The position numbers and the translations under genes are program-made. Under the pieces are notes generated by a model. It worked only from the letters and a program-made list of their open reading frames with translations, ran no database searches and was not told the DNA's origin. DNA of 64,000 bases. It comes from Oculina patagonica (taxonomy: Eukaryota). Below, piece by piece: positions 30,096 through 62,882 of this stretch. Within the stretch, counting starts at the first letter, position 1. Every line of letters begins with the position of its first letter. The DNA lies in assembly GCF_052425735.1 (NCBI RefSeq), contig NC_135768.1:6758001-6822000 (forward strand), in the 5' to 3' direction.

Positions 30096-31037
30096 TTACT
30101 GAAGAAAATTATTTTCATAGACTTTCACTGACTTTTTGGAGAACTCTTCATCTAATTCCACTTGTAAAAATTCTTCCAGCACTCTCCTCCCGTAGTTTTT
30201 CAAACTTTCGTCTTGAAACAAGCAAAAAATAAAATCACCCTTGATAACTTCACAGGCTCGCTTGAATTGATGCAAAAGATGAGCTTCGTACAGAACTGGA
30301 TCACTTGTGTAAACAGTCACACACCAAAGCATACATTTAACTCTCGGCGATAACACACCGAAGCTGACCGATCTAGGAAAACCACCATCGCCACATTTCT
30401 CGACAGCGAAATACAAATCGATTTCCTGCTGCAAATAATCGATATTTGATCGTAGAGGCTCGATAGGGGTGAAATCCAGGACGATGACCTTGTCTGGGAA
30501 CAATGTCTGTGACACGGGGCTAGAGAAAATAACATCGCATATGTATTCTTTAGTGCAAGCTTCAATCTGAATGGAATTATCAGCTGTAGAAAATTGATGC
30601 GAGCGTAAAGACGTCCTTTTAACAGAAGCGCTCAAAATTTCCAACTGCGTAAGTTTCGTTACCGAATGACTCGTGATCGTTCCGTCGGTTTCGAATTGTT
30701 CTCGACATACGCTTGGATATTGTCTTCGTATAAACTCATTCATCGTTTGTGATAACTGTTTATAAACACCTTTTCCGCGGAATTCTGCTAAAGTACGTCC
30801 TGCTCGAAGGATTGCTGTTCTTCCTTCGTCGACAATGGAACACGAAATCAAACCCACAAGTTTCTCGTCTAAATAGGCAAGCATAACATCTAACTTGTCC
30901 ATGTTCATCCACGCATGGTATCGCAATGGAAGATAGTCGTGTCCATGGTAAATTCCTTCTGACAGTTTCAGGATCTCTTCGAAGTCACTTGGTTTAGCAA
31001 GGCGAAAATCTAACTCTAGGTTGAAGTGGTCCATCAC
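30096..31037 (-). CDS. NAT16/histidine N-acetyltransferase-like GNAT, copy 1
   Basis: Single-exon 313-aa ORF. GIYHGHDYLPLRYHAW matches the NAT16/HISAT N-terminal signature; acetyl-CoA motif FRGKGV. Confidence 0.88.
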   Translation of the reverse strand: MMDHFNLELDFRLAKPSDFEEILKLSEGIYHGHDYLPLRYHAWMNMDKLDVMLAYLDEKLVGLISCSIVDEGRTAILRAGRTLAEFRGKGVYKQLSQTMNEFIRRQYPSVCREQFETDGTITSHSVTKLTQLEILSASVKRTSLRSHQFSTADNSIQIEACTKEYICDVIFSSPVSQTLFPDKVIVLDFTPIEPLRSNIDYLQQEIDLYFAVEKCGDGGFPRSVSFGVLSPRVKCMLWCVTVYTSDPVLYEAHLLHQFKRACEVIKGDFIFCLFQDESLKNYGRRVLEEFLQVELDEEFSKKSVKVYENNFLQ

Positions 31038-31146
31038 TGAAGGGTACGGTTAGCGTTAGGTTTTTTCTTCCTTTTTAAAACAATCCTCGCTTCGCTGGAT
31101 CTCGCGTGACGTGAATATTTAATATGATGATAGCCTGTTGCGATGG

Positions 31147-31167
31147 TGACGTCATTTGTCACGCTGG
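31147..31167. promoter_or_regulatory. CRE palindrome (TGACGTCA) within a paralog-conserved upstream motif
   Basis: tgacgtcatttgtcacgct, 110 bp upstream of the copy 1 ATG. Homologues at 34370, 36677, 38750 and 63091. Confidence 0.5.
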
Positions 31168-31370
31168 CTACGTTTTATAGTATTATATGCAATTTGAGCA
31201 ATAATGCAGATTTAAATGTTTCGTAGAGAAGTTTTATTTTATTTTTTTTATTTTTCCTCAAAGCGTTTCCTACAAAAGACGAGATATCTGGCAGACGCGA
31301 CTCATACACGGCGATCTTGAGACATAATCCATCAATCCAAATAATATACAAATCTTCCTTAACGTCGAGT

Positions 31371-60067: not shown

Positions 60068-60223
60068 GTCGATATTCGAAATAAACAGAGCTAGCCTAGA
60101 GCTGTCCCTAGACGGCAGGTTTAGCTGCAATCCATGTGCTACCGTACGGATGTGACCTTTGAAACAAATTGTGAACGTCAGCAAAACTCGCTAGCCGTTG
60201 ATCAAATGCGCCTTGTGTAGTTG
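60068..60223 (-). pseudogene. 3' remnant of a second methyltransferase copy
   Basis: tagacggcaggtttagctgcaat...gatgtgaccttt...aaattgtgaacgtc...gatcaaatgcgcc..gtgtagttgc matches about 44360-44540, including the 3' flank. Confidence 0.85.
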
Positions 60224-60605
60224 CTGCCCGCAGATAACATGAGTTCCATAAGGAATTCACCAGCCAAGGAAGGAAGAATAATGTAGCACGAAGTCAATAT
60301 GCTACCCACAGATAACATAAGCCCATAAGGAACGCACCACCCAAGTAACAGAGAATAATCCAACTCGAGGTCATTATGTTGCCCTATGATAACATGAGTT
60401 CAATATGGAACTTACCAGCCAAGTTAGACAGAACATTTTAGTACGTGGTCAATAGGTGCCCTCAGATACGGTGAGTTCCATAGGGTACTAACCACCCAAG
60501 TAAGACAGAATAATATAGCAGGATGTAAATATGCTGCTCTCAGATAACATGAGTTCCATAACGGAGCTCGCCATTTAAGAAATAGAGAATAATCCAGAAC
60601 GAGGC
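60222..60605. repeat. Diverged inverted block (about 5 units) of the same 78-bp satellite
   Basis: cagataacatgagttccataaggaa...ccaagtaagacagaataat is the reverse complement of the 26622-28594 unit. Confidence 0.9.
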
Positions 60606-61943
60606 TGTGAGCGTAGAACGTTACTCACAGGACGATCGTTAAATCCCACGTTAGAACAGAAAATTCTTGACGCGCTTTTATACCATTTGCTACAATAATG
60701 ATGCTCACGACAATAAGGATGTAAACAAAGTTTATTGAAGCGAAGCGATGAGACGTTAACAAACGAAGCGATGCGTAGCGAAGCGATGAGTAGATGTACA
60801 AGTGATTCGGTAAAGCGGTACAAAGTGGTACTAAGCGATAAAAGCGGTAGAAGCGGTTTCGAAAACTAAAAAGTAAATACAGCGAAAACTACAATTAGAC
60901 TAACTAGAAACTACCTTAAACTATGAAAACAAACTTCGGAACGATGCAAAACGACTTATAAAACGTAACATGCACAAAGTGAAAAAAGACTTACTTCTGT
61001 GTCCGCGTTAGGGATTTCACAGCGTTGACGTTGAGCCTTACTTTTGATGTTAACACGATGACACGTTGACTAGAACTGAAAAAGTTTCCTGAGCACGTTC
61101 GACAAAATGCTAGCTAACACAAAGGAAAATAGATTTCTTTGTTTGTAGATTATACGTAGGCAAGTATATCCGCGGCAAAAAACCACAAAAGCTAAAGATA
61201 ATAACGCGAAAGAACTACAAAGGGATCGAAAGGAAATACGGAAAACCAGAAAATATTTGGCAGTAACAGAGGCCAATATGCCCAAACACAGAGACTTGTC
61301 TGCCTGTAGCGTCACCTTGTCTGCCTGTAGCGTCAATTTATACAGCATAGAAAAGGAAGGCAGGCACAAAACGGTAACTTTACTATTATAATTTTACGTC
61401 AAATCGTTGTTGTAAAAGTCCAAAATGTATCACAAAACAAAACTACACATGGCGGACCTTCGATTGATTGATGCTGTATTTGTCAATGAGAACGATATGT
61501 TTAAACACGCACAACACATTTTTTCAAAGTTCTCATTGTGTTGGCACATAAGGTGGATTTCCACGCTCGTGGAGTTGGGGGGGGGGGGACGCAAACGTCC
61601 CCTCCCCTCTCCACGTGTCTGAATGAGTCACTGTTTGCAATTTACAACGTGTAGCAAGCCCAGTGGGTTGAATATAAATTTAATTTGGTTACACTCTTCC
61701 GTTTTATCGTCCTTACTTACATCGGAGAACTTTACTTCGATACACAATATATATATATATATATATATATTTTTATTTTTTTTAAAGAAATTTGCAGTGT
61801 TAAGGTCGGGATTCAAGTAACACACCGCAAAAGCGAAAGTGATGTTGCGCCATAAATCATTTCGCCTACAACCTCTTCGTGTGTTAAAATAAAGCTGTAA
61901 ATGTGAATTGCACTTTTGACCCCTCATCGATTTCTGTTTACAT

Positions 61944-62882
61944 TTAAAGGTGACTTTGCTGAAGAAACTTCTTGCTTTCGTACAGTTTTGCTGGTTTAGA
62001 CAGATTTTCATCTACTTCCAACAGCAGTTGTTCCTCCAGCACCCTTCTTCCGTGGCTCGTCAAACTTGTGTCGTGAAAAGAACCGAAAATAAAATCGCCT
62101 TTGATAACTTCACAGGCTCGCTTCAATTGATGCAAAAGATGAGCTTCATACAGAACTGGATCATTGGTGTAAACAGTCATAGTCCAATGAACATATTTAA
62201 CTCTTGGTGACAGTACACCAAAGCTGACCGATCTTGGGACGCTACCATCGCTACATTTCTCGACAGCGAAGTAGAAATCGTGTTCTTGTTGCATGTAATC
62301 GATATTTGATCCTAGAGGCTCGATTGGAAAATTATCCAAGATGATGACATTGTCTGGGAACAACGTCTGCGCCACAGGCCGAGAGAAAATGACATCGCAA
62401 AGATATTGTTTAGTGCAAGCTTCAATCTGAATGGAATTGTTAATTGCAGAAAACCGATGCGAGTTAAAAGTCTTCTTTTCAACATAACATCGTAGAATAT
62501 CCAACTGCACAAGTTTCGTTTGAGACGGATAACTTCCTAGTCGAGGTGTGAATCGCTCTCGATTTGCTTTCGGGTAGCGTCTACGTATCATCTCATACAT
62601 GGCTTGCAGTAGGCTCTTAGAAACACCTCGACCGCGAAACTCCGGTAAAGTACGCCCTGCTCGACGGATTACTGTTCTTCCGTCGTCGACAATAGAACAT
62701 GCAGCCAAACCCACGAGTTTCTCGCCAAAATAAGCAAGCATAACATCCATCTTGTCCATCTTCATCCACGCATGATATCTAAATGGAAGATAGTCGTCTC
62801 CTTCGTACATCCCTTCTGACAATTTCAGGATCTCGTCGAAGTCATTCGGTGTAGCGAGGCGAATTGTAAGCTCCAGGTTCAT
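61944..62882 (-). CDS. NAT16/HISAT-like GNAT, copy 10 (duplicate of copy 3)
   Basis: 312 aa; very similar to 35406-36347, including the flanks. Confidence 0.88.
   Translation of the reverse strand: MNLELTIRLATPNDFDEILKLSEGMYEGDDYLPFRYHAWMKMDKMDVMLAYFGEKLVGLAACSIVDDGRTVIRRAGRTLPEFRGRGVSKSLLQAMYEMIRRRYPKANRERFTPRLGSYPSQTKLVQLDILRCYVEKKTFNSHRFSAINNSIQIEACTKQYLCDVIFSRPVAQTLFPDNVIILDNFPIEPLGSNIDYMQQEHDFYFAVEKCSDGSVPRSVSFGVLSPRVKYVHWTMTVYTNDPVLYEAHLLHQLKRACEVIKGDFIFGSFHDTSLTSHGRRVLEEQLLLEVDENLSKPAKLYESKKFLQQSHL

Follow-up and report, generated by a model that had tools for sequence, protein, structure and literature searches.

A 64,000-nucleotide stretch of the genome of the stony coral Oculina patagonica (GCA_052425735.1, chromosome CM126645.1, 6,758,001-6,822,000; hereafter the window) carries an array of intronless genes for GNAT acyltransferases that resemble human HisAT (NAT16), together with a gene for a class I methyltransferase (MT). 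Our analysis makes it likely that this array arose by lineage-specific tandem amplification of HisAT/NAT16-type double-GNAT enzymes whose side-chain preferences have diversified, and that the embedded MT, of a carboxyl-methylating type, was copied head-to-head with a GNAT neighbor. In what follows the GNAT copies of the window are numbered 1 to 10 (G1, G2 and so on), and the arrays are called A (the window), C (locus L009) and B (loci L003 and L005).

A first-pass annotation of the window, made from the DNA letters, had described ten intronless GNAT copies of which seven were intact, an intact MT at 44385-45161 and the remnant of a second MT at 60068-60223, and all three descriptions were confirmed here. 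Searches with tblastn, using the window's own copies as queries, returned 10 GNAT-homologous segments, which comprise seven intact open reading frames (ORFs), one full-length copy with a broken frame and two N-terminal fragments. Every full copy exceeds the gathering cut-off of the Pfam family Hisat_C (PF24066), with E values of 1e-14 to 1e-20; this cut-off is 27 bits, and the scores of copy 8 and the seven intact copies are 53-71 bits. The MT ORF (MT_A) is uninterrupted, matches Methyltransf_31, Methyltransf_25 and Methyltransf_11 in Pfam (E 1e-20 to 1e-24) and maps to CM126645.1 6,802,385-6,803,161. The remnant was recovered at the DNA level as two matches to the MT 3' end, at 60063-60179 (78% identity, E 6e-24) and 60188-60224 (95%, E 2e-11), within a few bases of the coordinates first proposed.

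The array continues beyond the window. Further loci were reached through proteins that are annotated on CM126645.1 but missing from the window. One of these (L009, chromosome 6,852,792-6,873,721) holds MT_C on the minus strand and a GNAT on the plus strand with their start codons 690 bp apart. Six or more further GNATs lie in L003 and L005 together (chromosome 6,872,889-6,903,936), along with MT_B, which stands head-to-head with a GNAT of the same subtype as in the other pairs. Counted over its whole length of about 112 kb, the locus has at least 17 copies of the GNAT gene and, besides three intact MTs, one MT remnant. The annotation's statement that no unrelated gene interrupts the array stands for the window, where none of the ORFs of at least 100 amino acids (aa) between GNAT copies has a Pfam match, and fails for the larger locus, where a gene with a P2RX7_C domain lies between the window array and the next one.

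Comparison of the three divergent pairs identified what is duplicated. Pairs A (window), C (L009) and B (L005) have the MT, the intergenic DNA and the GNAT in common over about 2.9 kb. Between A and C the homology begins about 66 bp past the MT stop codon, runs through the MT, the intergenic DNA and the GNAT, and ends about 380 bp past the GNAT stop codon. The 483 bp upstream of the MT start are 91% identical between A and C and the coding regions are 93% identical, and the 300 bp past the MT 3' end cannot be aligned between the two. In array B, the 5' end of the window MT, together with the sequence upstream of it (window 45056-45234), also has an 83% identical counterpart at L005 5030-5207, directly upstream of GNAT B_f. 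The MT and GNAT face each other across about 0.7 kb, and in the window this distance is broken by an insertion of about 3.6 kb. The divergent pair of MT and -SHL GNAT (named for its C-terminal tripeptide) is the unit of duplication, and it is present in three copies within about 112 kb. The proposal that the GNATs and the MT both co-locate and co-duplicate was therefore borne out, by three divergent pairs and one remnant on the same chromosome.

Some details of these further copies deserve mention. The RefSeq model of MT_C (L009 1-9325; chromosome 6852792-6862116) spans more than 9.3 kb and has two isoforms that are alike except that one ends in V and the other in L, so the last codon may come from an alternative 3' exon. 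Two GNAT copies outside the window, copy c of array B (L003 7390-8328) and copy b of a coral scaffold from the Tara collection (L002 4051-4986), are full length except for a single internal stop codon.

The GNAT copies were assigned to the HisAT family on the basis of a structural model and of individual residues. A model of G3 (predicted local distance difference test score, pLDDT, 82) aligns with the human HisAT crystal structures 9EN3, 9EMD and 9EMP at template modeling (TM) scores of 0.83/0.79 and a root mean square deviation of 3.1-3.3, and the next fold class among its matches reaches a TM score of at most 0.6. In human HisAT, the substrate carboxylate is held by Tyr74, Tyr79 and the backbone of Gly123, CoA is bound by Arg131, Gly134 and Ala136, and the imidazole ring of histidine is stacked by Trp246 in the β7-β8 hairpin of the second domain (PMC12219266). 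We mapped these positions by profile alignment with high posterior support and extended the mapping to 126 coral family members. Tyr74 is kept in 117 of the 126 and Tyr79 in 124; the CoA-binding motif R-G-x-G-V-x is found in 7/7 intact window copies, and its R-G-x-G part is almost invariant across the 126. Together the Hisat_C score, the fold, the CoA motif and the carboxylate tyrosines agree with the HisAT/NAT16 double-GNAT family, and the modeled structure places the coral GNATs within the HisAT structural family. An array of intronless HisAT-like GNATs in an animal, as first described, is thus supported.

The histidine label that the annotation had attached to these enzymes is not. The column of Trp246 contains W in only 38 of the 126 family members and in 0/7 intact window copies, where G1, G2, G3, G4, G6, G7 and G10 carry F, Y, F, L, K, K and N, respectively. 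Since the residue that reads the imidazole is replaced in every one of them, the window copies should not be filed as histidine acetyltransferases. As this side-chain-pocket residue of the second domain varies from copy to copy, the copies probably take different substrates, with histidine not the default. We infer from the conserved residues that the coral GNATs still N-acylate amine-carboxylates, such as amino acids, and that it is the side-chain preference that has diversified. Because the carboxylate-binding tyrosines are kept, the product of such a reaction would retain a free carboxylate.

The copies also differ at their C-termini. The tripeptide -SHL closes G3, G6, G7 and G10 and the majority of their relatives in arrays B and C, whereas the last three residues are -FLQ in G1, G2 and G4 and -PAV in the MT. 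The consensus [SAC][KRH][LM] is that of the type 1 peroxisomal targeting signal (PTS1), which directs import into peroxisomes. It is present in G3, G6, G7 and G10 and absent from G1, G2, G4 and the MT; across the coral family, 20 of the 126 members end in such a tripeptide (SHL, CHL, SKL or SRL), and these fall into several separate clades. Judged by their endings, the -SHL copies are probably peroxisomal and the -FLQ copies probably cytosolic.

The MT was modeled at a pLDDT of 91. The best fold matches of this model among reviewed proteins are nearly all carboxyl O-methyltransferases, aligned over their full length: nocamycin O-methyltransferase, JHAMT, DnrC, BioC and Tam. The TM scores are 0.79 for Bombyx JHAMT, 0.75 for Drosophila JHAMT, 0.76-0.77 for Tam and 0.72-0.73 for BioC, and the solved structures of JHAMT, Tam and an Anabaena protein match the model as well. 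The motif DLGCGTG, which binds S-adenosylmethionine (SAM), is invariant in the coral MTs. In a profile alignment, the nearly invariant coral Q18 aligns with JHAMT Gln14, and the invariant H112 and the nearly invariant W113 align with the L-H-W of JHAMT. The Gln and H-W residues of JHAMT-type enzymes are presumably the carboxylate site; a structure of a Q15E mutant exists. The coral MT therefore has the class I fold with motif I and lid as well as the N-terminal Gln and the H-W of the JHAMT/Tam/BioC type, in agreement with the Tam/JHAMT structural type first suggested for it. These matches point to a small-molecule methyltransferase of the carboxyl O-methyltransferase structural class. The MT is not placed as a member of any named carboxyl methyltransferase: its scores against the curated NCBIfam models are 83 bits for BioC, where the cut-off is 185, and 58 bits for Tam, where it is 297.

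Two more specific origins of the MT were considered and set aside. RefSeq gives the protein the automatic name 'JHAMT-like', and we did not adopt a true JHAMT orthologue, given the identity of about 20% and a review according to which cnidarians lack JHAMT and take their sesquiterpenoid pathway no further than farnesoic acid (PMC9181382). A bacterial operon as the source of the pair was rejected within the scope of an MT profile scan of 185,579 prokaryotic genomes. The nearest relative in that scan is 31% identical over its full length, and a HisAT-type GNAT was found at 0/80 of the loci fetched around such relatives, with one marginal match (E 0.004). Since no HisAT-type GNAT accompanies these 80 prokaryotic relatives, the pairing is not an inherited bacterial operon.

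The linkage of MT and GNAT is also seen in other corals. Annotated relatives of both families exist in Stylophora, Orbicella and Porites, and many more occur in assemblies derived from corals, where the short contigs that bear them may be transcripts. Of the synteny that the annotation had named as a check, the linkage of GNAT and MT was recovered in two other coral assemblies. On a 1.41-Mb contig (L001, ERZ25067872), a GNAT is followed 1 kb later by an MT, and on the Tara scaffold (L002) a GNAT on the minus strand, an MT on the plus strand and a GNAT on the plus strand lie inside 5 kb. The MT of the L001 contig (9992-10549) matches the window MT up to about residue 164, its ORF of 182 aa then ending in unrelated sequence; the C-terminal part was not found in the three forward frames read downstream to about 11100. 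In the MT tree, the GNAT-linked MTs (six proteins, from the Oculina loci, L001, L002 and L010, the last of which is likewise from Tara) form one clade with 99% support in the Shimodaira-Hasegawa-like approximate likelihood ratio test (SH-aLRT), within which the three Oculina copies are nearest to one another. Members of this clade with enough flanking sequence adjoin a GNAT at 5/5 loci. MT paralogues at 57-60% identity, from one other Oculina chromosome and one other coral, have no GNAT within 10 kb. Synonymous divergence (dS) between the Oculina and L002 MTs is about 0.75, and the ratio of nonsynonymous to synonymous divergence (dN/dS) is about 0.22. Because the linked MTs form a single clade, dS has reached this value and the more distant paralogues are unlinked, we conclude that the MT entered the array once, before Oculina and the L001 and L002 taxa split, and was later amplified with its neighbor in the Oculina lineage. 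With two linked enzyme classes and a linkage kept across species, the locus has this feature in common with metabolic gene clusters. Elsewhere in the Oculina genome, on chromosome CM126647.1 (L006 10001-12651), two MT-family paralogues stand in tandem beside a RING-finger gene, with no GNAT nearby.

Both families are under selection. Pairwise dN/dS values by the Nei-Gojobori method are 0.15-0.35 between MTs and 0.26-0.41 between GNATs, so that the intact pairs of both are under purifying selection, which is rather relaxed for the GNATs.

These results lead us to a working scheme for the two enzymes. The GNAT copies would N-acylate amino acids, with different side chains accepted by each copy, the -SHL copies acting in peroxisomes and the -FLQ copies in the cytosol. 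The MT may in turn methyl-esterify the free carboxylate of a GNAT product, although we regard this step as unlikely rather than likely. The chemistry would fit, because the GNAT product would keep its free carboxylate and the MT resembles enzymes that methylate carboxylates. That the GNATs and the MT act on one metabolite is plausible from this chemistry and from the linkage, but we hold it only tentatively.

How far the pairing reflects function can be argued in several ways. A two-enzyme cassette, in which the GNAT N-acylates an amino acid, the MT esterifies its carboxylate to give neutral N-acyl amino-acid methyl esters and a bidirectional promoter co-expresses the pair, is a possibility that we treat as doubtful. 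It would account for a divergent pair whose start codons lie about 0.7 kb apart and which has been duplicated as a unit three times, for intergenic DNA conserved at 91% between pairs A and C next to an MT 3' flank that is not alignable, and for the single clade of linked MTs that adjoin a GNAT wherever enough flank is available. The resemblance of the MT to carboxyl O-methyltransferases with conserved Gln and H-W, and the carboxylate-binding tyrosines of the GNATs, whose product would retain the carboxylate, are consistent with it too. However, the partner GNAT has a peroxisomal-type ending and the MT does not, GNATs far outnumber MTs, linkage can last by descent alone, and no such product from corals is reported in the literature that we searched. 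Some of these observations, together with others, weigh against an obligate coupling of GNAT and MT. The at least 17 GNAT copies compare with only three MTs, one MT has decayed to a remnant and the MT of the L001 contig is truncated while the neighboring GNATs are intact, and both gene order and the subtype of the partner GNAT differ in L001 and L002. Furthermore, the intergenic region shared by the pairs is split in pair A by the 3.6-kb insertion, and among the best 120 matches per family only two foreign contigs carried both families, a weak test. Our other inferences have limits as well: a dN/dS of 0.3-0.4 is fairly relaxed, the equivalence of the Trp246 position comes from a profile alignment and not from an inspected superposition, and a C-terminal tripeptide alone is no proof of peroxisomal import.

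The pairing may instead be a matter of hitch-hiking, in which a dispersed coral MT copy landed in the GNAT array and was carried along by segmental duplication and gene conversion while acting on an unrelated substrate; we give this serious weight, at somewhat less than an even chance. Most members of the large MT family lie away from GNATs, as tandem MT pairs on another Oculina chromosome and the L007 and L008 loci without a GNAT illustrate. The three Oculina MTs are each other's closest relatives, so their triplication was recent and local; one MT copy has already decayed, and the insertion that broke the shared intergenic region cost neither gene. Against such passive carriage, the linkage has survived to the dS seen between taxa with the MT under the constraint given above, the duplication unit ends close to both genes, and the chemistry of the two enzymes would be complementary. 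The remaining probability falls to other relations, for example a shared regulation without a shared substrate. We rejected, as highly improbable, the idea that the genes are the cargo or debris of mobile or virus-like elements, or decaying retrocopies, in a repeat-rich region. Their lack of introns, the 3.6-kb insertion and inverted duplicates of the region and the fragmentary state of several copies would suit that idea. In contrast, the older copies are homologous only over the coding sequence and about 100 bp, no terminal repeats or transposase surround the units, the ORFs between copies lack Pfam matches, all intact pairs are under purifying selection, GNAT subtypes are orthologous across coral species and RefSeq has models for sister copies. 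The most far-reaching reading of the array, a maintained coral-specific cassette in which a partly peroxisomal N-acyltransferase and a carboxyl O-methyltransferase under a bidirectional promoter would produce diversified N-acyl amino-acid methyl esters, we judge improbable.

The array can be compared with several known systems. Human and vertebrate HisAT (NAT16; 9EMD, 9EMO, 9EN3; PMC12219266) shares with the coral GNATs the double-GNAT fold (TM 0.83), Hisat_C, the N-terminal acyl-CoA motif and Tyr74/Tyr79. In contrast, the coral copies are only about 22% identical to it overall, none of the window copies retains Trp246, each coral gene consists of one exon, the genes stand in arrays of at least ten where vertebrates have a single gene, and a subset ends in -SHL whereas human NAT16 is cytosolic. 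The coral MT shares the class I fold and the same C-terminal lid with the JHAMT/Tam/BioC/DnrC group (TM 0.72-0.79 over the full length), as well as DLGCGTG and the aligned Gln and L-H-W of JHAMT; unlike them, it is only about 20% identical and falls far under the NCBIfam cut-offs for BioC and Tam.

Conjugation of acyl-CoAs to amino acids is carried out in vertebrates by the peroxisomal or mitochondrial enzymes BAAT, ACNAT and GLYAT. Two of these, BAAT and ACNAT, possess a PTS1 but differ in fold from the coral GNATs, and the likeness of this group to the coral enzymes is one of function and would be hypothetical. GLYAT has the double-GNAT fold (PMC12219266). 

Among cnidarians, a further comparison is offered by the terpenoid clusters of octocorals, in which genes of different enzyme classes are linked and the linkage is conserved across species. 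The Oculina array similarly has physically linked enzyme classes in a cnidarian genome with linkage across species, but it contains only two classes and consists mostly of copies of one family. To our knowledge, animal genomes rarely hold linked genes for successive small-molecule steps. Our literature search found no paper on HisAT-like genes, acetylhistidine or a GNAT-MT cluster in corals, and none on this enzyme family in cnidarians.

Overall, the array is a variant of a known enzyme type in an unusual genomic arrangement. A recently characterized enzyme type, HisAT/NAT16, has been amplified in a coral to at least 17 copies that keep the catalytic and carboxylate-binding residues and vary the residue that reads the side chain, which is a warning against the database name 'histidine N-acetyltransferase-like'. 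If the GNATs and the MT do act together, their products in corals would be doubly capped amino acids, a family of compounds for which no one has searched and which might serve in signaling, defense, osmotic balance or symbiont exchange. Otherwise, the array would still be a clear natural experiment in the substrate diversification of the HisAT fold.

Positions of the GNAT copies, the methyltransferase and associated features in the window (position 1 is the first base of the window; Trp246 refers to human HisAT).
Feature	Position	Strand	Description
G1	30096-31034	-	Intact, single-exon, 312 aa; C-terminus -FLQ; F at Trp246 position
G2	33336-34403	-	Intact; longest ORF 355 aa, conserved start near 34271; C-terminus -FLQ; Y at Trp246 position
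G3	35406-36347	-	Intact, 313 aa; C-terminus -SHL; F at Trp246 position; copy used for structure modeling
G4	37724-38629	-	Intact, 301 aa; C-terminus -FLQ; L at Trp246 position
Intergenic stretch	39481-43141		Bounded by inverted duplicate 39481-40096 / 42519-43141
Assembly gap (N run)	43214-43421		In repeat-rich intergenic DNA
MT_A	44385-45161	-	Intact class I SAM methyltransferase, 258 aa; modeled fold JHAMT/Tam/BioC-like
MT-proximal intergenic part of divergent pair	45162-45644		91% identical to pair C
Insertion of about 3.6 kb	45645-49212		Splits ancestral intergenic region of about 0.7 kb
GNAT copy 5 fragment	49356-49547	+	First ~64 codons only; local duplication of 5' end of copy 6
G6	49843-50775	+	Intact, 310 aa; C-terminus -SHL; K at Trp246 position; divergent partner of MT
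G7	52714-53643	+	Intact, 309 aa; C-terminus -SHL; K at Trp246 position
GNAT copy 8	54908-55838	+	Full length, 97.3% identical to copy 7, one extra T
GNAT copy 9 fragment	57304-57560	+	First ~85 codons, itself frameshifted
Second-MT remnant	60063-60224	-	Last ~50 codons with internal deletion, plus ~30 nt past the stop codon
G10	61944-62882	-	Intact, 312 aa; C-terminus -SHL; N at Trp246 position

The only defect of copy 8 is a run of seven T at 55401-55407, where copy 7 has six (53201-53206). The extra T could reflect a genuine frameshift or an error of assembly, and in the latter case the window would hold eight intact GNAT copies.

The gene calls are independent of the assembly gap, which lies 964 bp past the MT stop codon and 4.6 kb upstream of copy 4. 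Homology searches with both families found no GNAT or MT sequence next to the gap, and the sole ORF across it (43155-43520) owes its existence to translation of the N run; we thus rejected the idea that the gap hides a gene or a frame problem. As the gap lies between them, the adjacency of the G1-G4 block to the MT holds at scaffold level only. Array B and L002 provide gap-free examples of this order, with the MT first and a GNAT after it on the same strand. On the left side of the gap is a 623-bp inverted duplicate (39481-40096 versus 43141-42519) of 98.6% identity, whose right copy stops 73 bp before the gap, and this recent duplicate is probably the cause of the gap.

Repeats also characterize the insertion that separates MT_A from its partner. 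It holds inverted repeats of about 1 kb (45716-46711 versus 47372-48009) that are 97% identical, each of which carries a 32-bp tandem repeat with a 16-bp sub-period (45792-46333 and 47741-47930), and none of its ORFs has a Pfam match. Beside the second-MT remnant, a 77/155-bp tandem repeat (about 72% matches) occupies 60222-60573 and begins exactly at the end of the remnant.

To the left of the array, the window contains exons of a GCN2/EIF2AK4-type gene (11428-17685, plus strand; its protein kinase and HisRS-like exons lie at 11.4-16.7 kb) and a BTB-BACK-Kelch gene (22955-24390, minus strand). Two existing GenBank models within the array differ from the gene structures given here. ACROYT_G035080 (654 aa; window 30096-34403) merges copies 2 and 1 into one protein, and G035082 (224 aa) covers only part of copy 8, the frameshifted one.

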